From Podarcis bocagei (Eukaryota), in NCBI GenBank assembly GCA_964188305.1, contig OZ076888.1: a DNA stretch of 64,000 nucleotides. One strand, given 5' to 3'. A model generated the notes under the pieces. It searched no databases and had not been told where the DNA came from. It worked only from the letters and a program-made list of their open reading frames with translations. The stretch's first letter is position 1. The number at the start of each line of letters is the position of its first letter. Positions 10,871 through 62,362 of this stretch are shown one piece after another. Both the position numbers and the translations under genes were made by a program.

Positions 10871-10875
10871 GCCCC

Positions 10876-11242
10876 GGGATGCAGGTGGCGCTGTGGGTTA
10901 AACCACAGAGCCTAGGACTTGCCGATCAAAAGGCTGGCGGTTCGAATCCCCGCAATGGGGTGAGCTCCCATTGCTCGGTCCCTGCTCCTGCCAACATAGC
11001 AGTTCGAAAGCACGTCAAAGTGCAAGTAGATAAATAGGTACCATTCCAGCGGGAAGGTAAACGGCATTTCCATGCACTGCTCTGGTTCACCAGAAGTGGC
11101 TTAGTCATGCTGGCACATGACCTGGAAGCTGTATGCCGGCTCCCTCGGCCAATAAAGCGAGATGAGCGCCGCAACCCCAGAGTCGGTCACGACTGGACCT
11201 AATAGTCAGGGGTCCCTTTACAATCAACAACAATCAACCTTA
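10876..11242 (+). mobile_element. Sauria SINE (Squam1), full length
   Basis: Head gggatgcaggtggcgctgtgggttaaacc, box B ggttcgaatcc, typical body and 3' end; 10-bp TSD gtctagcccc (10866-10875, 11243-11252). Confidence 0.95.
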
Positions 11243-12495: not shown

Positions 12496-12779
12496 NNNNN
12501 NNNNNNNNNNNNNNNNNNNNNNNNNNNNNNNNNNNNNNNNNNNNNNNNNNNNNNNNNNNNNNNNNNNNNNNNNNNNNNNNNNNNNNNNNNNNNNNNNNNN
12601 NNNNNNNNNNNNNNNNNNNNNNNNNNNNNNNNNNNNNNNNNNNNNNNNNNNNNNNNNNNNNNNNNNNNNNNNNNNNNNNNNNNNNNNNNNNNNNNNNNNN
12701 NNNNNNNNNNNNNNNNNNNNNNNNNNNNNNNNNNNNNNNNNNNNNNNNNNNNNNNNNNNNNNNNNNNNNNNNNNNNNNN
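12496..12779. other. Assembly gap (N run)
   Basis: Run of N. Confidence 1.
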
Positions 12780-13940: not shown

Positions 13941-14900
13941 ACTATAATGACCATTATGAAGCAAATGAGTTCAAAACTATTTCTCAAGGCTCATCCACTC
14001 TTACCTTTCGCCCCACACTTTCTAGGCACAGGCCTGTGCTTTCCTGGTTTGTTTCTGAGAGCACCCCGCTCCCCACCGCTTTCCCCAAGAAAACCCAGTT
14101 TTTACTGCTGAATTGGAACAAATTGCCATTTGTTCCGATTCAGTAGTAAATAGTGGGCTTTTGCCGGGGCAACCCCTCCCCCCCCAAAAAAAAGCAAGAG
14201 GCGGCGGGGGGGGGAGGTTGTCAGACCTGGAAACCCCAGATCTTTGCCTAGAAAGCATGGGGCAAAAGATAAGTGTGGATGAGCTTTCACTTTGTGTATC
14301 TTACTCTACCTTTTAAAGCTATGTTCACCCACAGTTTAAAAGGAGGGCGGAGCTTGTATCCAATGCTCTGGATTTGATTTTGAGGGTGCACATGGGTCTG
14401 GAAGGGACAGGAGAGAGGAAGCCCCTGGCCTGAGCAGAGTTGCAGGTTTGGATACAGCCCAATGTCCTTCTTTATTAACCTTCCTTTCTTGTAAAGGGCT
14501 GTGTTCACTGAAGAAGGATGTTCTATGCAGCTGTTTTGCATTCCAACACAAGTGAGACAGAATGGAATCTGCTCCTCACCTTCTCCGCAGTTCTGCTTGC
14601 TTTGCATTCAGGCACAATGGGCCAGCTGTGAGCTGCTACCCTTAAGTTCAACCTCATCTTCAGTACCCTGCAATGTCTCTCAAGCTTCCACTGACCATCC
14701 CATGCAGAACCCTGGGATGAAACCAATAAGGTATGCCAAAAGTTATTTGGTGTAAGGGCTGTGCAATCACTTTGGATCAGATTCAGATGTGAAATAAATC
14801 AGGGTGGTTCATAGCCAGGTAAAATGAAGTGGAAGGCAACAGAAGCTGGGACAAGGCAGCTAGAACCAAAGTGCTTAATGAAGTTTCAGTTGTATTTTGT

Positions 14901-16725
14901 TTTTTTGTTTTTTTTAAATATTTTTATTGGTTTTTCACCTTTTATGAATACATAACACACACAGAAAAGACAAAAGACGAAAACATGTATAATTTCAGAA
15001 AATCCTACTTTCCTAACCTTGTTCCTTAACTTCCCCCCACCCCCCTTCATGCATCCCAATTCCCATAATTATGTCAGCAAATTGGTATTTCTCCTCTTAA
15101 CCATCTTAATATTACCTCTTTTATTTAAAAAAAAAAAGTTTTTCTAAGTTGGACTCAAATTCCCTTCCATCGATTTCCCATTTTGTCTTAGGTAAAAGTC
15201 AAATTAACTAAACCCAAAAGTCCTGAGTGTTTTTAACGTTCTATTCTTCCCTCCCTCCCATCCCCGGTTTTCGTCCCTTCCCCAGTACATGTCCAAAATA
15301 ACAGTTCTTAGCCTGGATTCCTCACGTCCGAGGCTTTCAAGTCTCTTTCAGTCCCTCTCCGCCGGTCTTGTTGGTAGTCCTTTATATTGGTCGTCGAATC
15401 TTGAAGGAATTCTGTCCCCATCAAACCAGGTTCTCTTCCCACAAGGGCATTTGAAAACAACTGCTGCAAAAGTTCCTCAGGCCATGCATCTTCAAAGTCA
15501 GAGTGAAGGCCCCAATCATATTTCTTCTTTATTTTGAGTTCCTGTATTCCATATACTCCCGGGGCCTCCTCCTTCGTCTTTTGCATCTTTCGCAGATTTG
15601 TAATCAATGTAATCCAAAAGTCTCCTTGCTTATATTCCACTGGTGTAAGCTTCTGGTTGGTACTTTCCATCTTTGCTTTCTCTTCTCCTTGTTTAGTCTC
15701 CTCCACTTCTTGAGTTATCATTTCCGATTCAGCTGCAGATTCTTTCTCATTCAGGTCCTCAATACATTCAGCAGAGCTGCTTGTTCCAGAAGTCAAGGTC
15801 ATGAGTTGTTTATTCATAGCCAGACTCTGCTCTTGTAAGATTCCCACCAAATGAAACATTCTTTCGATTTCCACTAGTAACTTTCCATCCACAGCCATTG
15901 TAATGTCACAGAGTTCCCCCTAGAGGGAATCTGGTTACTTAATAATCTTTCTCCAATAATCCTCTGACTTGTTGTTGTTACTTTGTTTCCAACAATTTTA
16001 GTTCAATTTTAACTGATTTTAATCCAGAGGGATCTTAGATGACAATTTTTCAACTTTAAACTGTCCGTTTGACAGCTTTGACAGCTGTCAAACTCCGCAT
16101 TCCTCTTCCATAAGCTCAAATACAGGACGCTCCCGGGCCCGGGAGGGGGGGTTACATACAACAGAAAGAAGGCTTCTAAAATTCCACTCTTTCACTCCAG
16201 CTCAAAATTTCTTTTTGCCAAATCTTGGAAGTTAATCTCTTTTTTAACTCACCCCACAAAGGGTAGGCTCTCCAGCTTAGTTCTTCTATAGTTGCTTTAG
16301 ATCGTCTGCAAGAGGGGGGGTGCGGACTTCCTTTTAGCACACACCCCGGTCGTCTCGAATTCACAGGAAAATATTCTTAAAGTCCAATTTCATCTTACTC
16401 ATGGGTTATTCTTTTTCAGTCCGAATTTCAAGGAAGGAAGTCAGCTCTCTCCAGTCATGGCTCGCGGCTCCGCTCAACCGAGGTAGCGATCGACTCTCAG
16501 CGCCACGCCACCCTCCGTACCCTCTCCGCAGCCTTTAAAAAGGCTCTTCGTGGGTCGGGGGGCGCTTAAGGCGCCCACCGAGTCTTCTAGTCCGCAGGCT
16601 TCAGCGCCTGCGGTTTCTAAGGGTCTCCGCGTCGCCGGCGCAGCAAGACCCGTCCTCAGTTGAGCCGATTCCCTCCGCAGCTCGGAGGGAATCCGCCATT
16701 CCCAGATCGCGCCAACCCGGAAGTC
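14901..16725 (-). mobile_element. Full-length ~1.8-kb non-autonomous L1-type (HAL1-like) retroelement, copy 1
   Basis: 15-bp TSD tcagttgtattttgt (14886-14900, 16726-16740); poly(A) tail with AATAAA on the minus strand; CpG-rich 5' end starting GACTTCCGGGTTGGCGC; no RT or endonuclease; homologous to 21228-22974. Confidence 0.9.
15308..15898 (-). CDS. Element-encoded 196-aa E/K-rich ORF (possibly an ORF1p-like remnant)
   Basis: Longest ORF in the track, in the element's sense orientation; GKLL (N-terminal) and DxRxPG (C-terminal) recur in broken frames of copy 2. Confidence 0.45.
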   Translation of the reverse strand: MAVDGKLLVEIERMFHLVGILQEQSLAMNKQLMTLTSGTSSSAECIEDLNEKESAAESEMITQEVEETKQGEEKAKMESTNQKLTPVEYKQGDFWITLITNLRKMQKTKEEAPGVYGIQELKIKKKYDWGLHSDFEDAWPEELLQQLFSNALVGREPGLMGTEFLQDSTTNIKDYQQDRRRGTERDLKASDVRNPG

Positions 16726-16926
16726 TCAGTTGTATTTTGTGTAATGATTTTCTGCCTTGCCTATGTCCAGGAAGGGGCAGAAAAGGGTGACTGAGTGCTA
16801 GTCAGCACTGTAATTGACAAGTCTATCTGTCAATGGAATAATGCCTTACATTGCCTGCATGATGCAAATATCCATATCAAATTTTGCAGAGATTTTACCA
16901 AAGGGCACCTCTGTATTCCCTATGAG

Positions 16927-16928
<2 letters not shown>

Positions 16929-16963
<35 letters not shown>
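16929..16963. repeat. (CT)n microsatellite
   Basis: Visible directly. Confidence 0.95.
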
Positions 16964-16969
<6 letters not shown>

Positions 16970-18449
16970 ATGTAAAGTTTTTTTTAATTAAAGTATTTTC
17001 CCCCCTAACATAAAATTAAAAGCGCAGCCAACAAAAAAGAAAACATAATCAAAATTACAAAACAGAAGAGCAGTACATTTATTTTCCAAATAAATAGAGA
17101 GAAGATAATGTGGAAAAATAAAAGCAGCAAAGCACACAATGAAAGCTAAATTTTGTGATTTGGTGAGGGAAGAGAGTTTTGTATATCTGAATTTGACACA
17201 TAAGAAATTAAATTCCACCCAAAGGCATAGGAATGTTCTGGATCTTCCTTACCATTAGAAGCATGTAATTTGTGAGTTATTTTCTCTACAATAGCCAGAA
17301 TCCACATGTTCTTACACCACAATGAAAGGGTTAAGTCCTGTACTGTCTTCCATTTCTGGGCCAAAGGAGTTCCATGCAAATACTTAGTTTCAAAAGCCAG
17401 GTGGCAGAGCAGCAGAAACTTTTTTAAAATGTTACCTTTGGAACATAAAAAGCCGCTGGACCTATTTGTCTGAAATGTCAGTATTTTAGCCAAAAGAATG
17501 CAATTCTGTGGTAGAAAAAGGTGAAATTTATAGATGTGTTGTGTTTCCCCCATTTAAAACAGTTGGAAATGCAAAAAAAAAGTTTCATTTATGAAACAAA
17601 GCAGCTCTACAAAGTGGGAGTGGAATGAAGCCCCCAAACCAACAAAACGTAGTGGTTTCTGAAAATAAAACAAGGAATCTGAACTGATTTGGAGATGCCA
17701 GGAACTGAACACAGGAACTTTTGCACTTGAAGTAGCTGCTCTACCACTGACTTTTATTTTGATGTGCTAGTTGTCCATGGGAAAATGGGGCAACGTTTAA
17801 AACGCTTCCTCTCCGCCACCCCTGAAGTGACCAAGTCCTAAGAGGGCCATATCATGTCTCTTTGCTAAACGTGCCATCCAGTTCTAAGCTGCCTATATAG
17901 CTTGTCGCAAGGCTTTCTGCCTATTGTTCATCCCAGCTCTCCCCTTATCAGGTCTGCTGCTGCAGATTTGGAGAAATAACGCATTTGTCACAGCAGAGAG
18001 AGTGGCTGTACAGTCATAAACTCACAATGCTTGGCTCTCTGCCACTGTACACACAGCCCACTGGAATGCATGTGATGGCATCTGGTGGTATAGACTGATG
18101 GCAAGGGCACAACATTCGCTTTGGCACAATGCTGCAGTGACAGAGCGCTGGCAGGGCAGCAAAGGGTGGCACTTGCCAGGGATGGCAGCCTTCTCAGAAA
18201 GAAGGGCAGAAACACGGCTGCCCTTCCACAGAAACACAAAGAGGATTCTGACATGGGATTTCTGTTGTCACATGCTCACATTCACCGGCAGCTGGTGATA
18301 ATTCTGCCCATCTCAGAGGGGAAACTACTGTTGCTAAGAGCAATGGTTTTCACTTTTCAGATCTGCATTCTGCAACCCTTTGGTCTGCTTGTTTCCCGGG
18401 GTTTCTGTCCCACCTTTCCTCCACCATAGAGCCCAAAGTGGCGTAGATG

Positions 18450-18546
18450 TCGCTCCCAGGAGCTCTTGCAGGCACTGACCAGACCCAAACCTGCTGAGCT
18501 TCAGCCAGGTGGTGGCCTCACGTGCCCTTCAATCCATACCCTGGCC
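18450..18546 (-). mobile_element. Degenerate SINE with 5S rRNA-related segment
   Basis: Reverse complement gctgaagctcagcaggtttgggtctggtcagtgcctg resembles the 8425 copy and the 5S internal control region. Confidence 0.5.
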
Positions 18547-18737
18547 ACGATTTTCAATTATTATTAGCACAGAACACAGGGAAAGTGCAGGAAGTGAGGC
18601 ATCCAAGAAATGAGATGTGATGGTGGATATAGTTGCTTGAAATGTACTTCTGGACAGGGGAGATTTTCTTTGGGGTGAGGGTGTCATGTCAAGTTTTTCT
18701 CCCTCTCTCATATTACTAGAAAGCAGGGCCATCTGAT

Positions 18738-19035
18738 TGAAATATACTCGGAGTCGAGAGTGGATTTCATGCTCTTTATTCAGCTCATAGTGGTGAGGAG
18801 GAATGGAAGTTCCCCCAGAATGTCTGCTTTATATACATTATTTACACAATGGGCCCCACGTGATTGGCTAATTCCGGGATTCTCCTGTAGGTCAATCAGG
18901 TTGCGGATTCACTTCCACCTGGAGCTGGATTGGGTGGCTCCTGTGGACCAATCAGACTGTTGCATTCTGGATCCTATTGTTCTAGGACCAATCAGACTGC
19001 TGCATTTTGGATCCTATTCAACTCAGTACATAACA
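18738..19035 (-). mobile_element. Solo LTR (298 bp)
   Basis: TG...CA ends; 5-bp TSD ctgat (18733-18737, 19036-19040); TATATAAA then AATAAA on the minus strand; duplicated CCAAT-containing module. Confidence 0.9.
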
Positions 19036-21227
19036 CTGATGAAGCTGAATTGGGAGGTGGGAGACATCCAGAGGAGGCAAAGGGAAGGACTCCTTCATAC
19101 AGCACATAGTTAAACTATGAAATTTGCTCCCACAACACCATGGGTTGTACCCAACGCTCTGAAAGCAGCCACAGAACTTCCCATTCCATGCTCTCCCCAC
19201 CCACCGCACTCCCAGATTTGACCCCCTGGAGCTGATTTTGCAAATGCACGGGACACTGCAAAGGAGGTCAGAGGGAAGTTCCATTCTGCAGCCACTAGTC
19301 TTTTGTGCTAGTAGGACAGGGACATTGGAAACCAGTGGCCTGCTGTCAGTGGGCCTGGGGGACTAGGCTGATCTGCTAAATGTCCCCCTGGTATTTCCTT
19401 CCCAAATCCTGGGAAGCTTCTGCCCAGCTTAGGGAGGGAGGCGCAATGCTCACACATGCAACATTGAGATGTCAGCCCCCGCCAATCGCCCTTGCAAGCT
19501 GGCACCTCTGGCCCCAACTGTTCCCCTATGAAAAATTTCACCACATGCCACTCTTGGGGACCAAGAGACAGGGATTCTCCAGCTGTTATTCCTGCAGGTC
19601 CAGAACAAGTGGCACAGTCCAAAGGATGGATATCCTAGGTATGGATTTGTTTTTGACATTTCAGGAAAAGTCCTCCCCCTTTATTTCAGTTCGGCAATAT
19701 AAATAAAATACTTTGTAGTGTGGCTCACACCACTAAGCACAGAGACTGTGAAAGGTGCCAGATAAGAAATTTCAATCTGTATATAAAGAGTTACAGAGGG
19801 ATAACACGATAAAAATCTGACCAAAGACTTCAATTAGGCATCTTCAGTAATCCCAAGCACATCAGAAATAAAAAATATCATCTAGGAGAAATATATAATT
19901 AGCAGAGACCAGGAGAGAAATAGCCTTCATCAAACACCACAATGCGCACAGTTCAAAAGCTGAATATTCAAATTAAAATCCCAAATTCGTTCAGTGACCT
20001 GCCTCTTTGCAGATCAATGGAAACAGGGGCACACATCTCCTTTGATACATCTCTGCTATGTAAAGTGTCCTTTAACTAAACAGGGTCAAAAACCATAAAT
20101 GATTACTGGAAATGATTTGACAACTGCACAGCTACATTCATTTTAAATAGGCATTAATTCATTTAATAGAGTTGGAAGGGGGAACTGTTCTGATCGCTGT
20201 AAAGTGGGACAGAGAAAGGAAGGAAGCAGATGGCATTTTACAGCTAACATTCACAGGAAAGTCGGTGTTCTTGGGGAGAGTCATTATTATCGCTGTCCTT
20301 ACTGTGGCACCCCCAGGAATTACTTGGTATATGAAATTCCATGGCTGTTTGGTTGCTTCAGGTTTACCAGTAAGACTAACCTCACTCAAAAAACACTCCC
20401 AGTGAATCAATAGCTGTCACTACCTACTGGGTTCAAGAGCATAAGGAGAGAATGTGTGTTTGTAGAGAGAGGGGGGAGGGGAAGAGAAATGTTTTCTAGT
20501 TTTGCACCTATTCATATACATTGGCACACGCACATTTTATGCATGTCCACTGTTGTGCACTTTTTGGGGACTGGAGTGAATGTTTTTCCTCTTTTTTGGC
20601 AATGCATTGGACACCTTAAGCTAACTCAATCAGTTTCCAGTTTCTTACATGCAAAGATGCCTAGAGTGAAGAGGATGACCTTTTTCAGTCTGTGGGCTGC
20701 AGTCGCTTCTGGAAAGCTGTATGAGGGCTTGCCAGTGGTGGGCAGGTCCAAAGGCAAAAGTGTGCACAAACAGATACAAAAGTGAGCAGAACTCTTCATC
20801 TGGATTTTGCCTTGGTACAGAAGGCTACTTTCTACCCAGACTTACACGCCCTCAAGTTGCACCAACTCCTAGGGGGCAGAGGTATCTTCAGCCCCCACAA
20901 AATATTCTGGCACAGGGCCAGACCCCCTTAATATTGAAGGGGCAGAGGAAGCCAATCATTGAGGTGAGTGCCACACAGTCCAGTGGCTGGCTCCTCCTGA
21001 GCATAGAGAGGAAGCTGTGCCACAACTGGGCTCTGTGCTTGACCACCTCCCGACAATGTGACGTCATGCACGCCAGCCCTTCCAATCTTGGGCACAAGAT
21101 GGCCCCTCTGCACATGCCTCTATACCCTCTATTCAGGCAAGCAAGAGGCATTATCCAAGTTCAAGGGCACATTGCATGAAAAGAGGGTGCAAAGCAAAGT
21201 TAGTGAGAGCTGTGGGGCCAGATTTTG

Positions 21228-22974
21228 TTGTTGTTTTTTTAATCATATTTATTAAAATTTCCAATATTGACAGAATAGAAAAAATAGAAAAGATAAAGAA
21301 AAGAAAGAAAAAGAAAGACCAATTTTAAACCCTTATTTTCATAACTTTCTTTCTGGGACTCCCTCCTTCCCCTCCCGACTGTATTCCCCTTTCCCTAAGT
21401 TGGTTCCACAAGTTCTCATTCCCAATTTAAGCCTAATATGTTGTGCCTATTAGCCAATTTAAATTACAATCTTAACATCACTCCTCATCTTTAACAAAAT
21501 AGAAAAAAGATTTTTCCCCCAAGATCTACCCCGTTTCCTTCCACGAATTCCCCCTTTTTTTCAAAACATGTTAAATCACAATACCAAAGTTATATAGAAA
21601 GATAAAAGATAAAAGATAGAAGAAGATTCAAAAAGTTGGGTACATAGCCTTTGGATTCTAGAATTCCCCCTCCCTTCCCCGGTTTAGATTCCCCATGTCC
21701 ATCAGTCTGTATGTTGTCGGCCTGGAGGTCTCAAGTCCACAGCCAAATTTTCCTCAAACCATCTTGCCGGTTTTCTTTAAATTTACTTGTTTTGATGCTG
21801 TTTAACTTCAAAAATCCAGTCTAATAGAGGCCTTTAATTTCCTTTGGTCATAGTTGCTCCTCCCATTGTTCTTTCCGTGGCGTAGTTGGTCCTTTGCTCT
21901 TTTATTTCTTACTTTCTCAGGTTTCTATCTTGTTCAGCTGCAAAACCATTCTTATTCCGAAATCTAGTATCTCTACAGAGGTTTGTTATTCAGGAACAAA
22001 AACTTACGTCCAGTTCCTACCTTGCTTCAATAGAAAAATTCTATTGTGTTGTCACCTCTGTAGACAAAACAATATTTCAGTTTAGCTGCTTTCCCAGGAG
22101 ATAAGTCCTGTACCCATCCCGGAGTAGTTTTCCACATACGCCACTTGTAATGTCCCAAAGCCCCTCTAGGGGGGTTGCAGTAACTTTGTATCCTCTATTC
22201 CAAAAGTCAAGTTGTTGTTTCTTTTTTCCCCCGACATTTTGTATCCATATTTATGTCCAATTGTAACAAAATTTACCAGCAAAATACTTATAACAAAGTC
22301 CTCTTTATGTTCTCAAGATTTGACAGCTACTTTGACAGCTGTCAAATTCTCCATCTCTCTCCGCCAGGTTCTCTGAATCGCCCCGGTTCCCAGGGGGGGG
22401 GTTGCCTTTTCCCTCTCACCCTCGACTTTTCTCCTCCAGCACAATTCTTGTAGTATCCCATCGTGGAATTGATATTTTTTGTCAGCAATAAGCTTCTGAA
22501 TCGATCTTGGTTTCTCAGTCCTTGTTTTAGCATGTTTACAATCAGGAAGGGGACTGACTTCCTTTTTAGATCCCCCCCGCTCGTGCCGAATCCGAAAAAA
22601 AATTCCTTTTTTTTCTCCTTTTATACCCGGTTACCCAATTACTCACGGGTTGTTGTTAAATAGTCGAATTTTCAATAGAAGAAGCCAGCGCTCTCCGACG
22701 AATGGCATGCGGCTGCGCTCGGCAGGGGAAGCGATAGACTCACAGCACCACGCCGCTCCCCGGCACCCGATCCGTAGCCTTTAAAAAGGCTCCTTCACGA
22801 GTCGGGAGGGCGCTAACGGTACCAGCCGAGTCCCCATGTCCACGGGCTCCGTGCCCGTGGTTTTTAAGGGTCCCCGCGTCGCCGGCGCGGTAGGACCCAG
22901 CCCCTGCCGAGCAGACTCCCTCCGGAGCTCGGAGGGAGTCCGCCATTCAGCGATGGCGCCAACCCGGAAGTCCC
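21228..22974 (-). mobile_element. Full-length ~1.75-kb non-autonomous L1-type (HAL1-like) retroelement, copy 2
   Basis: 18-bp TSD ctgtggggccagattttg (21210-21227, 22975-22992); poly(A) with AATAAA; 5' end GGGACTTCCGGGTTGGCGCC homologous to copy 1; ORF region disrupted. Confidence 0.9.
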
Positions 22975-23027
22975 CTGTGGGGCCAGATTTTGCCCATGGA
23001 ACCTAGGTTCTCATTTGTGATCTAGAG

Positions 23028-23091
23028 CAGGTATTTGCAGACCCAGGACCCACTTTTAACCCAAACATGTGTTTGTGGACCCACTTCTATT

Positions 23092-23129
<38 letters not shown>

Positions 23130-23484
23130 GGTACCTTGGGTTAAGAACTTAATTCGTTCTGGAGGTCCGTTCTTAACCTAAAACTGTTCTTAACCTGAGG
23201 TACCAGTTTAGCTAATGGGGCCTCCTGCTGCCGCCGGGCCACCGCCGCACGATTTCTGTTCTCATCCTGAAGCAAAGTTCTTAACCCAAGGTACTATTTC
23301 TGGGTTAGCGGAGTCTGTAAGCTGAAGCGTTTGTAACCTGAAGCGTCTGTAACCCGAGGTACCACTGTATATGTATTGCTTATTTTATGTATATTTGCTC
23401 TGTGGTAATGCTCCTGCTGTGACCCACATTTGATCAGGACACGACCCACTAGGGAGTCCTGATTCACCTTTTGAACATCAGCAG
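23028..23484. mobile_element. Old hAT-Charlie-like MITE hosting a Tigger-like MITE
   Basis: Flanked by tctagag / cctagag; gacccac subterminal motif repeated on both sides of the nested insert. Confidence 0.5.
23126..23367 (+). mobile_element. Tigger/pogo-like MITE
   Basis: TIRs cagtggtacct.gggtta / taacccgaggtaccactg; TA on the right flank; close inverted copy at 50942. Confidence 0.9.
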
Positions 23485-27485: not shown

Positions 27486-27836
27486 AAAGGTAAAGTGACC
27501 CCTGACCATTAGGTCCAGTCGTAAACGACTCTGGGGTTGCAGTGCTCATCTCACTTTACTGGCCAAGGGAGCTGGTGTACAGCTTCTGGGTCATGTGGCC
27601 AGCATGACTAAGCTGCTTCTAGTGAACCAGAGCAGTGCACAGAAATGCCATTTACCTTCCTGCCGGAGCGGTACCTATTTATCTACTTGCACTTTGACGT
27701 GCTTTCGAACTGCTAGGTTGGCAGGAGCAGGGACCGAGCAACGGGAGCTCACCCTGTCGTGGGGATTCGAACCACCGACCTTCTGATCGGCAAGTCCTAG
27801 GCTCTGTGGTTTAGACCACAACGCCACCTGTGTTCC
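27486..27836 (-). mobile_element. Sauria SINE (Squam1), full length
   Basis: Reverse complement of the 10876 element; aaaggtaaag tail; degenerate TSD att(a/c)aataca. Confidence 0.95.
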
Positions 27837-29203
27837 ACGATTCAATACATACTTGATAGGAAATATCCTAGTTCTAGCTAACTAAGGTGGAGATATGAAG
27901 AACTCAGTAGGAGAGATGCTAAAACGATGTCTCTTCTTCCAAGGTGAAGATGAAGAAAAAGAGGAAGTAGGAAACCCTAAAATTATCAATCTAACATGGA
28001 AGGAAGAACAATAGGTTCAGTGCCTCCTTCTCACATGTTGGTTATTGACCATCTGCAGTCCAAAGGGCTGTGCAGAATACTATTGTGCCAGCAAGTTTCC
28101 TGGCAAAAACCAGCCAGGTTTGAATCAGAGATCCACACTGTGTGGTAATAAATATAAGTGGCAAATTCTGCTACCTTAACTTTCTGTTCTTAGTTTGTTG
28201 AGTCTGTTCTTCCCACCTTCTGGAATTCTGCCTATTCTGGAGATCTAGGATTTTGTTCAAGAAACTGTCTGAAGTCTTGGTCTTCTCTTGATTTGTCTTG
28301 GGTTCTGGGACATTGGTCTGCAAGTTTTGCTGGGCATGTTGTGGATTTGTGATTACCTGAGGCTCTCATGAAAGGCTTAGAGGATTGGCCAATCAGGAAG
28401 CCAGAACTTTATTATCTCACTCCCCTAAGAAGAAAAGAACAGCAACAGGAAATGACTCTACCCAAATAGACCCAAACCCTATCCAGAGAGGGGCTTTGCT
28501 GCTGAAATTAGATCTAGTCCATGGATCTGGACCTGAGGTCCACCAGCATGCTCCTGAAAAAGTTATATCTTTTGATTGTGCCATTGACTTTAAAATGCTA
28601 TTCATACACGTGTCGAACACTAAAAAAGTAAAAAGGTATAATGCTCTTTTCAGGCATAAAGCCTGAAATTTCTGTATGGTGAGAGGGAGATTCTGAAAAT
28701 CTGGTCCTTTATATATTGTTCCTGAGTGGGGCACCTAGAAGTGACAGGTACACACACCTGAGTAAAGCGCATGCCCCACCTGCTGCAGATGACTCCTACC
28801 CCTTCTTCATTCATACCATCTTCCCTGATGACACTGCCGTTTCTGCATCTTTCAATAAAAGGCACGGCTCTTTTAAAAAAATGAAACAAACAAACTCCTT
28901 TAGTCCCAAAGGAAGGCTGTGCGCATGTATGAGCCTGGGGAAGGAAGAAAAGCTTGCTGTTATGTGAAAGGGACACAGCAGGGAGATTAAGATCTCTATC
29001 GGAGCTTGTGGCAGCGATGATTAGAGTGCATTAGGGCTCTCTCGGTGTTGACAAACACTGCCCCAATTAGGAATTAGTTCAGCATGGCATCTGATAGCTC
29101 TGCCACTGTTGACCTGCTTAATAGGCTGGCCTTTTCCTCCCCTTCATTTGCTTGTCTGTCTGTGGCCCAGGACAAAAGCTCTGGAAAAAAACACTCCTCT
29201 CTC

Positions 29204-36058: not shown

Positions 36059-36333
36059 TAACTCTGCACAAGAATTACTGTTACCTCAGTGGGACTTCAC
36101 CCATTCCCCCTGCGAGTGCCCTGCACCATTCCCAAATCTGTTTCAGAGGATTGGAGGAACCCCTAGAACACATACGGCAGGAGGAAAGAGGGGAAAGTCC
36201 CATTGTGCTGGCAGTAATCTTTGTACCAATGAGACCCTGTTCGAAGCAATCCAGTAGAAGGCATCCTCCTCATTTCTTTGTTGTCCCACCTTTTACAGTG
36301 GTATTCTTAAACAACATCTATCACTTAGCACCT

Positions 36334-36688
36334 GGGACGCGGGTGGTGCTGTGGGTTAAACCACAGAGCCTAGGACTTGCTGATCAGAAAGTCGGCGGTT
36401 CGAATCCCCGCGACGGGGTGAGCTCCTGTTGCTCGATCCCTGCTCCTGCCAACCTAGCAGTTCGAAAGCACGCAGTGCAAGTAGATAAGTAGGTACCGCT
36501 CTGGCAGGAAGGTAAACAGGGTTTCCGTGCACTGCTCTAGTTTGCCAGAAGCAGCTTAGTCATGCTGGCCACATGACCCGGAAACTGTACACCAGCTCCC
36601 TCGGCCAATAAAGCGAGATGCGAGATGAGCGCCGCAACCCCAGAGTCGGTCACGACTGGACCTAATGGTCAGAGGTCCCTTTACCTTT
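36334..36688 (+). mobile_element. Sauria SINE (Squam1), full length
   Basis: 13-bp TSD tatcacttagcac (36319-36331, 36689-36701); ccctttaccttt tail. Confidence 0.96.
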
Positions 36689-42874: not shown

Positions 42875-42919
<45 letters not shown>

Positions 42920-43390
42920 TTTTATTTATACCCCGCCCTCCCCAGCCAAGGCCGGGCTCAGGGCGGCTAACAAGCAATAATAAAAACAAGTTGAATGATG
43001 ACAACTTAAAAACAAAATTAAAATACAACATTAAAATATTGAAACATTAAAATATTAAAATGTAGCCTCCTCGCAGGAGGAGAAGGAAAAGAAAACAGAA
43101 AGGGAGGGAGGGAATCAAATTGGCTCCAAGCCAAAGGCCAGGTGGAACAACTCTGTCTTACAGGCCCTGCGCAAAGAAATCAGATCCTGCAGGGCCCTGG
43201 TCTCATGAGGCAGGGCGTTCCACCAGGCCTGGCTCTGGCCCTGGCTCTGGTTGAAGCCAATCTAACCTCCTTAGGGCTTGGGACCACTAGGGTGTTGCTA
43301 TTTATGGACCTTGAGGCTCTCTATGGAGCATACCAGGAGAGGCGGTCCCGTAGGTACAAGGGTCCTAGGCCGTGAAGGGCTTTAAAGGTC
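42875..43390 (-). mobile_element. Young L2 LINE 3' end
   Basis: (AAT)n tail, 3' UTR and ORF2 C-terminus; closely similar inverted copy at 50028-50623. Confidence 0.92.
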
Positions 43391-50027: not shown

Positions 50028-50568
50028 AGCAGCTGCACTGGCTCCCGGGGGAGTACAGGGTCAGATTTAAGGTGCTGCTTTTGACCTTTAAAGCCCTTCA
50101 TGGCCTAGGACCCTCGTACCTACGGAACCGCCTCTCCTGGTATGCCCCACGGAGAGCCTCAAGGTCCATAAATAACAACACCCTAGTGGTCCCAGGCCCT
50201 AAGGAAGTTAGATTGGCTTCAACCAGAGCCAGGGCCTTTTCAGCACTGGCCCCAACTTGGTGGAACGCTCTGTCTCATGAGACCAGGGCCCTGCAGGATC
50301 TGATCTCTTTCCGCAGGGCCTGTAAGACAGAGTTGTTCCGCCTGGCCTTTGGCTTGGAGCCAGTTTGATTCCCTCCCTCCCTCTCTTTCTTTTTTCTTTT
50401 CCTTCTCCTCCTGCGTTGAGGCTACATTTTAATATTTTAATGTTCCATTATTTTAATGTTGTATTTTATTTTTGTTTTTAAGTTGTAATCATTCATCTTG
50501 TTTTTATTATTGCTTGTAAGCCACTCTGAGCCTGGCCTTGGCTGGGGAGGGCGGGGTATAAATTAAAA

Positions 50569-50624: not shown

Positions 50625-50941
50625 CCACTAACCCCTGATCATTCCCTTCTGTTGGAGATCGGAGCTATGTGTGACACTCAGCTTGGCATGCATCCTCTAC
50701 ACAGGCCTGCTGCCCTTAGTTGCTGTGGAGGAGGCTATCCCATTGCCAATGTCAGGTTTCTGCACCTGAAAGGAAGGGAGGTGCCGTCTTGCCCTTTGCC
50801 TCAGGCAGCAAAATGTATTGGAATGGTCGTGGTTGGAACTGAATCTCATTGCAGACATGATCCAAGAGAGTCCAGTTCTGACAAGCCTATGCACCCCTTT
50901 CAGAGAACCTCTACAAAGGAGGTTTCAGAGTCTGGCAAGTA

Positions 50942-51183
50942 CAGTGGTACCTCGGGTTACATATGCTTCAGGTTACATACACTTCAAGTTACAGACTCCA
51001 CTAACCCAGAAATAGTACCTTGGGTTAAGAACTTTCCTTCAGGATGAGAACAGAAATCACGCAGTAGCGGTGCAGCGGCAGCGGGAGGCCCCATTAGCTA
51101 AAGTGGTGCTTCAGGTTAAGAACATTTTCAGGTTAAGAATAGACCTCCAGAATGAATTAAGTTCTTAACCTGAGGTACCACTG
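50942..51183 (-). mobile_element. Tigger/pogo-like MITE
   Basis: TA TSD on both sides; TIR cagtggtacctc.ggtta; reverse complement of the 23126 copy. Confidence 0.93.
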
Positions 51184-52639
51184 TACCATCTAAATTGCTC
51201 TGGTATAACCACCCATCAACACCACCAAAGAAAAAAATCAAGTTGCACACGACCTTAGACTAAGGAAACATTTGGGGATTCATCTGAAACTTTGCAGGCA
51301 CTTCAACTGAACTAACGGCTTCTTCATCAGCATGTGGGTGGTGGGCAAATCTGCATGCACAGCGGTTGGTGTAGCTGCAGTGGGGAGGCATTTACTTGAC
51401 CTCCAAACAGTGGAGTCACTGCTTCTTACTGGGAGGGAGAGTGGCAGTGGGGCAGAAAGGTTGGCGCAGTGCAAACTCATCAGCAGAGCCAATCTCTAAA
51501 TCCTTGTCCTTCTCAGTAAGCAGTGACTCAGCAGTCAGGAGGTCAGGTAGTGGTGCCTCCCGCCACACCATTCACATATGTGATGCTGGAGCTCTTATGT
51601 GTTCACTAGAGGTTCCACATCCACAAGGAGACTCATTCCAAGGTGGCATCAAGCAGACATTGTGCCATCCTGTTTTTCCTACCCCACCACTCTCCATAAA
51701 GAAGGGGGAAACTTGGGAATTGGCAGCCCAACTTGGCCAGAGGCCAGGACTGGCCACCTCACATGCAAGACGCTCTTGGAATTTATTTAAAGCGGTAAGA
51801 CGAGAGGACAGTTCAGAGCACTGGATTAATTCCACTTTCTCCCCTCTCCCTTCCTCTTTTTCTCTCCCTCTCTCTTTTTTATTAGGAAAATAAAAGAGAC
51901 TTTGAAATATTAAGAGATAGTGGGATTAGAGCCCTCTCCTGCTAGCCCCAGTATTTCCTCCCCTATTAATTTCCACTTGATTAGAATTCTTTTTGAAGTA
52001 TTTAAATATGGACAATAGGAAAAGGGGAGGGTGAAGTTATTGAATATCAGTTAAACTGTATTAATATAAGCTCAGTTCCTGCTTTTATATAGATACTTCA
52101 TATATATGTATAGTCTCCACCAGGAATAAAGTAGCCCTAACCCTCCTCCCCACCTCAAGTAATTATGATTTCTTTTTTTAAAAAAAAACACTATAATGAA
52201 ACTCTTAAACTTTAATAGCCCATTTATAAATCCCTAGCTTAAAATTTAAATGCTTAAAAAAGTTTTAGAACTGTGGAAATTTGATTCCTCCCCCCACTTT
52301 TTTTTTATAGACATAAGAGGCACATTTATAATGTTAAACTTGTGAAGCGTGTATTACAAAAATGCTCACCCATTGCCCTGATGGAAAAATTGAAGCCAGG
52401 AGGTTATCGGGGAGTTTTAATGGCCGTCTGTTTGTAGTAGGGGAGGGGGTGGCGCTTGCATCTCTTAATTGGGGGTGGGGAACAATTGACAAGTAGAGGA
52501 ATCAGCCTGGTATCCTTTCCCATTGTGGAGCGCCATGGTAGAGGGTCACAAAGCATTTCCCTTTTAAAGAAGGCTAAAGCTGTTGCCGTGCACAGAAGCT
52601 AAATCTTGGGTCTCACCCCCCCCTCCCCACTTCTCCTTC

Positions 52640-62225: not shown

Positions 62226-62362
62226 NNNNNNNNNNNNNNNNNNNNNNNNNNNNNNNNNNNNNNNNNNNNNNNNNNNNNNNNNNNNNNNNNNNNNNNNNNN
62301 NNNNNNNNNNNNNNNNNNNNNNNNNNNNNNNNNNNNNNNNNNNNNNNNNNNNNNNNNNNNNN
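62226..62362. other. Assembly gap (N run)
   Basis: Run of N. Confidence 1.

Follow-up and report, generated by a model that had tools for sequence, protein, structure and literature searches.

Two diverged copies of an abundant lacertid retroposon family that lacks a reverse transcriptase and probably moves by L1 machinery

A 64,000-nt stretch of Podarcis bocagei DNA (contig OZ076888.1, assembly GCA_964188305.1; hereafter the window) carries on its minus strand two elements of similar length, A (14901-16725, 1825 bp) and B (21228-22974, 1747 bp). They raise the question whether such copies are deleted remnants of L1 retrotransposons or members of a family that spreads without a reverse transcriptase (RT) of its own. 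A first-pass annotation had noted the same 5' motif at the start of both copies, and the 17-nt sequence GACTTCCGGGTTGGCGC was indeed found exactly twice, once per element (16709-16725 and 22956-22972, both on the minus strand); the chance expectation is 0.06 even if up to three mismatches are allowed. The long target-site duplications (TSDs) with an A-rich start, the AATAAA signals with poly(A) tails at both 3' ends and the G-rich tracts in the 3' UTRs of A and B, all listed in the same annotation, were recovered as well. The TSDs are perfect in both copies (15 bp in A and 18 bp in B) and start on the element strand with (A)CAAAAT. The features of the two elements are as follows:

14886-14900, no strand: TSD of A on the 3' side of the element, TCAGTTGTATTTTGT, identical to 16726-16740
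14901-14915, minus strand: poly(A) tail of A (A8CA6), read from the sequence
14916-15307, minus strand: 3' UTR of A, with G-rich tracts at about 15033-15046 and about 15246-15270, the second block common to B
14923-14928, minus strand: AATAAA polyadenylation signal of A, separated from the tail by 7 nt (ATATTT plus an A)
15308-15898, minus strand: intact 196-aa ORF of A, start context ACAATGG, C-terminal motif DYQQNRRRGTERDLRASDVRNPG conserved
16068-16106, minus strand: conserved box of A round the palindrome TTTGACAGCTGTCAAAG, from motif search and blastn
16395-16725, minus strand: 5' head of A, a CpG island with a folded consensus structure, starting with GACTTCCGGGTTGGCGC
16726-16740, no strand: TSD of A on the 5' side of the element, TCAGTTGTATTTTGT, copy of 14886-14900
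21210-21227, no strand: TSD of B on the 3' side, CTGTGGGGCCAGATTTTG, identical to 22975-22992
21228-21240, minus strand: poly(A) tail of B (A7CAACAA), read from the sequence
21248-21253, minus strand: AATAAA signal of B, read from the sequence
21668-21685, minus strand: G-rich block of B, from blastn, homologous to the block directly after the ORF of A
21720-22146, minus strand: eroded ORF region of B, with the ATG gone, several stops and weak colinear traces
22330-22346, minus strand: palindrome TTTGACAGCTGTCAAAG of B, from motif search
22639-22972, minus strand: 5' head of B, from the shared motif, blastn, CpG content and the consensus fold
22973-22974, minus strand: two extra G of B between the TSD and the shared 5' motif, read from the sequence
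22975-22992, no strand: TSD of B on the 5' side, CTGTGGGGCCAGATTTTG, copy of 21210-21227

Both copies are young. The two extra G of B may be untemplated, cap-related nucleotides, as judged from known full-length L1-type insertions. Neither copy encodes an RT or endonuclease (EN), in agreement with the first-pass annotation: no sense ORF is longer than 196 aa in A or 68 aa in B. No ORF of at least 200 aa is present anywhere in the window, and no L1 lies within it.

Next, we compared A with B. The annotation had described conserved ends and a few internal blocks around a strongly diverged middle, and two methods agree with it. Only three stretches could be aligned by blastn: sense positions 1-331 (76% identity), 40 nt round TTTGACAGCTGTCAAAG and 18 nt rich in G (A 1456-1473 vs B 1290-1307, 94% identity). 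In an anchored alignment the head scored z = 32, the remainder of the 5' UTR and the 3' UTR 10-13, and the ORF region only 3.4. Head identity is 76-79% over about 330 nt; outside the head, the palindrome box and the G-rich block the likeness of A and B is weak or undetectable.

The head has a GC content of 0.61 in A and 0.63 in B, and its CpG observed/expected ratio is 1.06 in both copies vs 0.26 for the whole window. The consensus fold of the two heads contains 99 pairs (9 compensatory, 0 broken) and reaches -145 kcal/mol, vs -81 ± 6 kcal/mol for column shuffles. An Rfam gathering scan of the whole window gave no matches, and an E-value scan of 14800-23100 returned only one chance miRNA match (E 0.9). 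Because the Rfam scans found nothing, derivation of the head from a known tRNA, 7SL, 5S or snRNA was ruled out. An internal promoter had also been proposed for the family. The complete CpG-island 5' end found in both copies is compatible with a promoter carried in the transcript; the promoter itself stays putative.

The abundance of the family was estimated from public sequencing runs. Over 14909-16735 the summed DNA depth, which is not a copy number, was about 24,500-423,000 vs 97 in the flanks for X1, about 2,900-85,500 vs 10-22 for X3 and, under another organism label, about 50-1,770 vs 7 for X7. The 100- to 1000-fold depth steps coincide with the ends of A in DNA runs of two lizard species labels. 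Contig pieces matching A in all identity bands (80-100%) numbered 4095, 1646 and 722 in three DNA runs, and 656 of the 4095 pieces in X1 were at least 99% identical. Words of A were found in runs of 8 organism labels from 9 studies. In single-cell RNA, 2651 raw reads fell on A at about 5:1 in favor of the minus strand, library strandedness not being on record, and a 58-read RNA consensus is identical to the B head at 22829-22858. The depth steps at the element ends and the B-type head, a second branch seen in RNA, show a multi-copy family and thus not a single event. We concluded that the family is multi-copy, RT-less and transcribed, with subfamilies, and that A and B are diverged members of it, as the first-pass annotation had proposed, and not one-off deleted L1s. 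In our main reading, A and B, both full-length, represent two diverged branches of a single abundant lacertid family of non-autonomous retroposons; we put the probability of this explanation, including the mechanism proposed below, at about three in four.

The intact 196-aa ORF of A had been overlooked in the earlier annotation. It is a conserved orphan: a profile search of 1.84 billion proteins with no length filter returned only 10 proteins (129-215 aa), the sole species named for them being Podarcis lilfordi, where the annotation reads "hypothetical protein". Intact relatives (26-79% identity) share start and end with the A ORF, and the two termini are the most conserved parts (block variance 0.019 vs 0.0036; 0 of 2000 permutations reach 0.019). 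The protein is helical at the N-terminus, acidic in the middle and basic at its conserved C-terminus. A Pfam scan of the A ORF up to E 10 was empty and a protein atlas search gave no usable match. AlphaFold2 models built with 9 and 30 sequences had a mean pLDDT of 47 and 50, with only the N-terminal helix confident. A complex prediction for three copies of residues 1-90 scored 0.14, under the mark, which says nothing either way on self-association. The C-terminus was also considered as a 2A-type ribosome-skipping peptide, D(V/I)ExNPG followed by P. This reading was rejected: the ORF ends in ..SDVRNPG-stop, one residue short, the N position can be N, D or S in different members, and the ORF is not followed by a P codon. 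A hand tally of 13 family differences inside the A ORF placed 6, 3 and 4 at codon positions 1, 2 and 3. There is no third-position excess among the 13, which are private changes of A and silent on selection in active lineages. The comparison of proteins, in a database restricted to intact ORFs, suggests that the ORF may be under selection.

In copy B the ORF has been lost. Of the N- and C-terminus typical of the family, only weak colinear traces (GKLL..RTYLLGK and ..DLRPPG, respectively) can be recognised, yet B shows perfect TSDs and an undecayed CpG head. Because B looks young and keeps only eroded traces, the ORF was probably lost before B inserted. If branch B was already ORF-less at insertion, the protein would not be required in cis for every insertion, as one ORF-less copy and the reads of the B-type head suggest.

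These data can be combined into a proposed mechanism. An RNA polymerase II transcript would start at GACTTCC from a promoter that lies within the CpG-rich, structured head and so would be copied with every insertion. After polyadenylation behind AATAAA, the poly(A) RNA would be reverse-transcribed at an A-rich nick by the EN/RT of an autonomous LINE of the poly(A) type, with L1 as the most likely candidate, leaving target duplications of 15-18 bp. The family-specific protein of branch A, about 200 aa long, may coat or accompany the RNA of its own element, by analogy with ORF1p of L1, and branch B would have been ORF-less already when it inserted. L1 insertions are recognised by a poly(A) tail behind AATAAA combined with TSDs of 15-18 bp. 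The poly(A) tails after AATAAA, the long TSDs and the A-rich target start found here are the marks of an L1-mobilised non-autonomous retroposon, and it is from the tail, the TSDs and the target that we infer the use of L1 machinery. The target (A)CAAAAT is A-rich, yet it differs from the textbook TT/AAAA.

Other origins have to be weighed against the main reading. Two independent internal deletions of full-length L1s could also leave two copies with complete ends and no ORF2, but the high depth extends along the whole 1.8 kb and ceases at the ends, the longest Logan contigs encoding the ORF reach only about 1.9 kb, and no RT/EN trace is left in either copy; we give this origin almost no credence. 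That A and B arose as retrocopies (processed pseudogenes) from one or two host or lncRNA genes, and not as part of a self-propagating family, is highly improbable. Retrocopies would be expected at low copy number, but depth is 100- to 1000-fold above the flanks, with thousands of pieces from <90% to >99% identity; the ORFs are deeply diverged among subfamilies; and the head, the would-be 5' UTR, is better conserved than the coding part, the reverse of what is expected for a host gene. A host origin would suit the 5' end, which resembles a housekeeping-type CpG-island start with an ETS-like CTTCCGG, and the hypothetical-protein annotation in Podarcis lilfordi. A non-autonomous retroposon as described above might instead be driven by a poly(A)-accepting LINE clade other than L1, which we consider quite unlikely. 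LINEs of the CR1, L2 and RTE type are specific for their own 3' ends, and short repeat tails mark their insertions, but A and B combine AATAAA, a poly(A) tail and 15-18 bp TSDs as L1 insertions do. The slight departure of (A)CAAAAT from the classical L1 site points the other way, as do the many LINE clades active in lizard genomes (PMC5753468, PMC5203782).

The first-pass annotation had labelled the elements HAL1-like. The architecture fits this label; no homology of the ORF to L1 ORF1p was detected in Pfam, in the PDB or in the profile search of 1.84 billion proteins. If A and B were true HAL1s, that is L1 descendants minus ORF2, the 196-aa ORF would be a cut-down, fast-evolving ORF1p with a coiled coil, and the head and tail would be those of a lizard L1. 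The layout is identical (5' UTR, one ORF, 3' UTR with G-rich tracts, poly(A) tail), and no ORF2 is present in 1825 and 1747 bp with ORFs of 196 aa (A) and 68 aa (B) and an empty Pfam result. L1 ORF1p begins with a coiled coil, and a long N-terminal helix is the only part of the 196-aa protein predicted with confidence. The known types of L1 ORF1p carry Transposase_22 or RRM/zf-CCHC (PMC5203782). However, Transposase_22, RRM and zf-CCHC were absent from 15 of 15 family members (Pfam, E up to 1), and the family profile matched no L1 ORF1p in the PDB, only weak coiled-coil noise (WTAP, E 0.07). The 10 relatives of 129-215 aa are all that the large search yielded. A beta-rich RRM or CTD was not predicted in the AlphaFold2 models, whose confidence is low and which are too poor for a fold test. 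A true HAL1 is thus possible but doubtful. We also raise, tentatively, that the family is a distinct LINE parasite and not a decayed L1: a structured, promoter-bearing RNA head would have joined a lineage-specific non-ORF1p protein, acquired or arisen de novo, in an RNP that captures L1 ORF2p. In that case branch B would show that head and poly(A) tail suffice, the protein being supplied in trans or dispensable.

Under the main reading of an abundant non-autonomous retroposon family, these young and transcribed lizard elements might serve as a natural system for finding the minimal needs of a spreading L1 passenger. Candidates are the structured head, the palindrome box, the G-rich 3' block and the poly(A) tail, with or without a small self-encoded protein. 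The family also raises the questions how machinery is shared with parasites in lizard genomes where many LINE lineages are active together, and how an orphan protein stays conserved within an element that is itself parasitic on a parasite. Repeat libraries and gene sets of lizards would become cleaner once the family is recognised, the ORF having already been misread as a host protein of Podarcis lilfordi. Most known non-autonomous LINE passengers with a protein gene are mammalian (HAL1), and our literature searches found no such element described in lacertids or other squamates.

Three known systems can be compared with the lizard family. Mammalian HAL1 (half-L1) is presented, in the part of PMC5753468 that cites Bao and Jurka 2010, as a non-autonomous offshoot of L1 with several origins and ORF1p as its sole product. 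The lizard family shares with it a length of 1.8-2 kb, an own 5' UTR, a single ORF without RT/EN, a 3' UTR, a poly(A) tail, long TSDs and multiple copies presumably driven by L1 in trans. It differs in its lacertid host, in an ORF not recognisable as ORF1p by Pfam, PDB or the large profile search, and in a branch B that apparently propagates without the ORF; descent from L1 would be putative in the lizard family. SVA and other RNA polymerase II-transcribed L1 passengers (PMC3287187) are likewise non-autonomous, polyadenylated, TSD-flanked, divided into subfamilies and mobilised in trans, in the lizard family presumably by L1. SVA is a non-coding SINE-R/VNTR/Alu composite; the lizard elements instead possess a structured CpG-island head, and those of branch A also contain a conserved protein gene. 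The telomeric non-LTR element HeT-A of Drosophila encodes Gag only and depends on an RT supplied by a different element. Like HeT-A, the lizard family would be a non-LTR retroposon that retains a gene for a structural protein, a role only putative in the lizard, and has no RT. The Gag of HeT-A is a recognisable ORF1/Gag homologue and HeT-A targets telomeres, whereas the lizard insertions are dispersed and their protein is an orphan.

The anatomy described in the first-pass annotation was confirmed for the two retroelements (copies A and B), including the common 5' motif, the spans, long target-site duplications (TSDs), AATAAA with tails, and the lack of reverse transcriptase (RT) and endonuclease (EN):

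14901-16725, minus strand, copy A (1825 bp), tail A8CA6
21228-22974, minus strand, copy B (1747 bp), tail A7CAACAA
16709-16725 (A) and 22956-22972 (B), minus strand, common 5' motif GACTTCCGGGTTGGCGC
14886-14900 and 16726-16740, copy A TSD TCAGTTGTATTTTGT, 15 bp, perfect
21210-21227 and 22975-22992, copy B TSD CTGTGGGGCCAGATTTTG, 18 bp, perfect
14923-14928 (A) and 21248-21253 (B), minus strand, AATAAA
15308-15898, minus strand, copy A ORF of 196 aa, start context ACAATGG (absent from the first-pass annotation)

The common 17-mer occurs exactly twice in the 64 kb; the chance expectation is 0.06 occurrences even at up to 3 mismatches. Read on the element strand, both TSDs start with (A)CAAAAT. 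Copy B carries an extra GG between its TSD and the common 5' motif. An extra G in full-length L1-type insertions fits reverse transcription reaching the capped 5' end, and the two extra Gs of copy B are compatible with RT copying up to such an end. RT and EN are absent from both copies; in sense orientation the longest ORF measures 196 aa in A and 68 aa in B. Across the whole window no ORF reaches 200 aa, the other long ORFs are without a Pfam domain, and no L1 is present.

The window holds other repeats as well. Two inverted copies of 89% identity (23125-23369 and 50940-51184) represent a SINE-like repeat of 245 nt that is packed with GGTACC..GTTCTTAACC motifs, the former copy lying directly after a (CA)n run adjoining copy B; no family reached the Rfam gathering score at this repeat. 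A second SINE-like repeat of ~350 nt has three copies (10873-11221, 27486-27837, and 36331-36688; 84-97%) in both orientations. Inverted repeat arms of ~470 nt (42919-43390 and 50083-50568; 93-94% complementarity, 6.7-7.3 kb apart) could be DNA transposon ends or a single repeat present twice. Stretches of (ATA)n/(TAA)n are located at 10.7, 13.7, 41.6, 42.9, and 50.6 kb, and N runs at 12496-12779 (284 bases) and 62226-62362 (137 bases).

Words of copy A were present in runs of 8 organism labels from 9 studies. Four runs were aligned to 14300-16900 at a cut-off of at least 80% identity, and three sequenced DNA runs (X1, X3, and X7) gave the following values.

Depth over the element (14909-16735) and its flank; summed depths are not copy numbers
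X1: element about 24,500-423,000; flank 97; 4095 contig pieces
X3: element about 2,900-85,500; flank about 10-22; 1646 contig pieces
X7 (another organism label): element about 50-1,770; flank about 7; 722 contig pieces

In each of the three runs the depth jump coincides exactly with the ends of the element. The X1 pieces spread over a range of identities, with 656 at 99% or above, 1175 at 95-99%, 1487 at 90-95%, and 777 below 90%. The size and position of the step, together with this spread, indicate a large family with very young A-type members, and thereby decide against one-off deletions, the outcome that the first-pass annotation had set against a family. Depth over the head (the 5' part of ~330 nt from the common motif) is as high as at the 3' end, and thus gives no sign of a strong gradient of 5' truncation. 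In organism A, one contig spans the left junction of copy A and others extend 30 nt into its right end; thus the copy A insertion itself is present in independent samples of this organism. In the left flank, 14300-14473 shows an X1 summed depth 4- to 6-fold above the adjoining single-copy flank, with some depth in X3 and X7 too; this is another, lower-copy repeat.

Transcripts were found in the single-cell RNA run X22 (organism A), in which 2651 raw reads fell on the copy A element and 0 on its flanks, with about 12% of the run read. Minus-strand reads outnumbered plus-strand reads by ~5 to 1. In 3'-tag libraries, a common kind, the cDNA read has mRNA sense; if this library, whose chemistry is not on record, is of that kind, the minus-strand excess represents sense transcripts. 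Among the RNA data, 58 reads form a loose-end consensus with 30 nt identical to the copy B head (22829-22858), which indicates that the B-type branch is transcribed too.

Comparison of A with B by blastn matched only three blocks: the initial 331 nt at 76% identity, 40 nt surrounding the palindrome TTTGACAGCTGTCAAAG, and 18 G-rich nt directly 3' of the ORF. An alignment anchored on these blocks scored, relative to shuffles, z = 32 in the head, 13 and 10 in the two segments that make up the rest of the 5' UTR, 12.5 in the 3' UTR, and no more than 3.4 in the ORF region. We concluded that A and B are colinear relatives representing two old branches, in which the head evolves most slowly and the ORF region fastest. 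The head, palindrome box, pre-ATG box, G-rich post-ORF block, and poly(A) signal are kept in both branches, and the value of the locus is that an ORF-bearing and an ORF-less branch stand side by side, exposing the parts both keep. The palindrome box (16068-16106 in A, 22319-22360 in B) consists of the perfect palindrome followed by a third CTGTCAAA; its TGACAG repeats presumably resemble TALE-homeodomain (MEIS/TGIF) sites, and the box may serve as an enhancer within the element or form a hairpin in the RNA.

Both heads are CpG islands, with GC contents of 0.61 (A) and 0.63 (B) and a CpG observed/expected ratio of 1.06 in each, compared to 0.26 in the window and 0.4-0.6 in the rest of the elements. 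Their consensus fold has 99 pairs, 9 of them changed on both sides and 0 broken. The consensus energy is -145 kcal/mol versus -81 ± 6 in 200 column shuffles, and 9 compensatory pairs were reached by only 5 of the 200. Predicted from only two sequences, this fold lends support to a putative structured domain in the RNA or DNA; no known RNA in Rfam matches the head. An ETS-like CTTCCGG at +3 and an ATGGCGG core near +27, which we take to be YY1-like, are kept in both copies and fit a putative L1-style promoter inside the element, downstream of the start site.

The 196-aa ORF of copy A has no Pfam domain. Intact relatives of its protein (171-215 aa, 26-79% identity) and partial members (129-182 aa) come mostly from Logan assemblies, the sole named ones being Podarcis lilfordi "hypothetical proteins"; these relatives point to a lacertid host of the wall-lizard type. 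A profile search of all 1.84 billion representatives, without length filter, returned only 10 proteins, all of 129-215 aa. Transposase_22, RRM, and zf-CCHC matched 0 of 15 orphan-family members, and neither the PDB profile search (for L1 ORF1p) nor the protein atlas gave a match. AlphaFold2 modelled nothing with confidence beyond a helix of ~40 residues at the N-terminus. Conserved positions cluster at the N-terminus and in DYQQNRRRGTERDLRASDVRNPG, a motif at the C-terminus (block variance 0.019 vs. 0.0036 in permutations, p < 0.0005). Among relatives drawn from the protein database, which are intact ORFs only, the ORF has kept its start, its stop, and an uninterrupted frame down to 26% identity; this, with conservation at both termini, argues for probable selection on the protein in active lineages. 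At the ORF end (15308-15334), full-length members all finish in ..RASD(V/L)RxPG and a stop, the last nine codons being strictly conserved. A first-sight resemblance to a 2A motif was rejected, as ..NPG-stop failed the motif test.

In copy B the ATG is gone and stops occur throughout all three frames. All that persists of the ORF are weak, colinear traces: an N-terminal stretch similar to the most divergent family proteins, and ..DLRPPG at the C-terminus. The copy nevertheless retains its 18-bp TSD without a mismatch, a CpG-island head that has not decayed, and all predicted head pairs. Neutral decay following insertion could not have removed the ORF and left the TSD and head untouched, and therefore the ORF was already dead in the source element. 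Judged from this one copy and the B-type RNA reads, insertion does not seem to require the protein in cis.

The best reading is that family members are non-autonomous retroposons, transcribed by RNA polymerase II and polyadenylated, which would be copied by target-primed reverse transcription with an enzyme supplied by a poly(A)-type LINE. The driving LINE would most likely be L1, because L1 insertions are marked by a poly(A) tail after AATAAA and by TSDs of 15-18 bp at A-rich sites. A search confined to the literature turned up no account of such elements from squamates. The first-pass annotation had proposed a HAL1-like, non-autonomous multi-copy family; the depth and the lack of RT/EN bear out the latter part, and HAL1 or L1 descent stands as a proposal. 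HAL1, an L1 derivative encoding ORF1p (PMC5753468; domain types in PMC5203782), is the closest in architecture, but ORF1p is its defining feature and the orphan ORF of the lizard family did not match it in the Pfam, PDB, and large profile searches. Although the lizard element works like HAL1, it does not qualify for that class. SVA-type passengers (PMC3287187) follow a similar scheme of RNA polymerase II transcription, poly(A) tails, and mobilisation in trans; they are non-coding, unlike the ORF-bearing lizard branch A.
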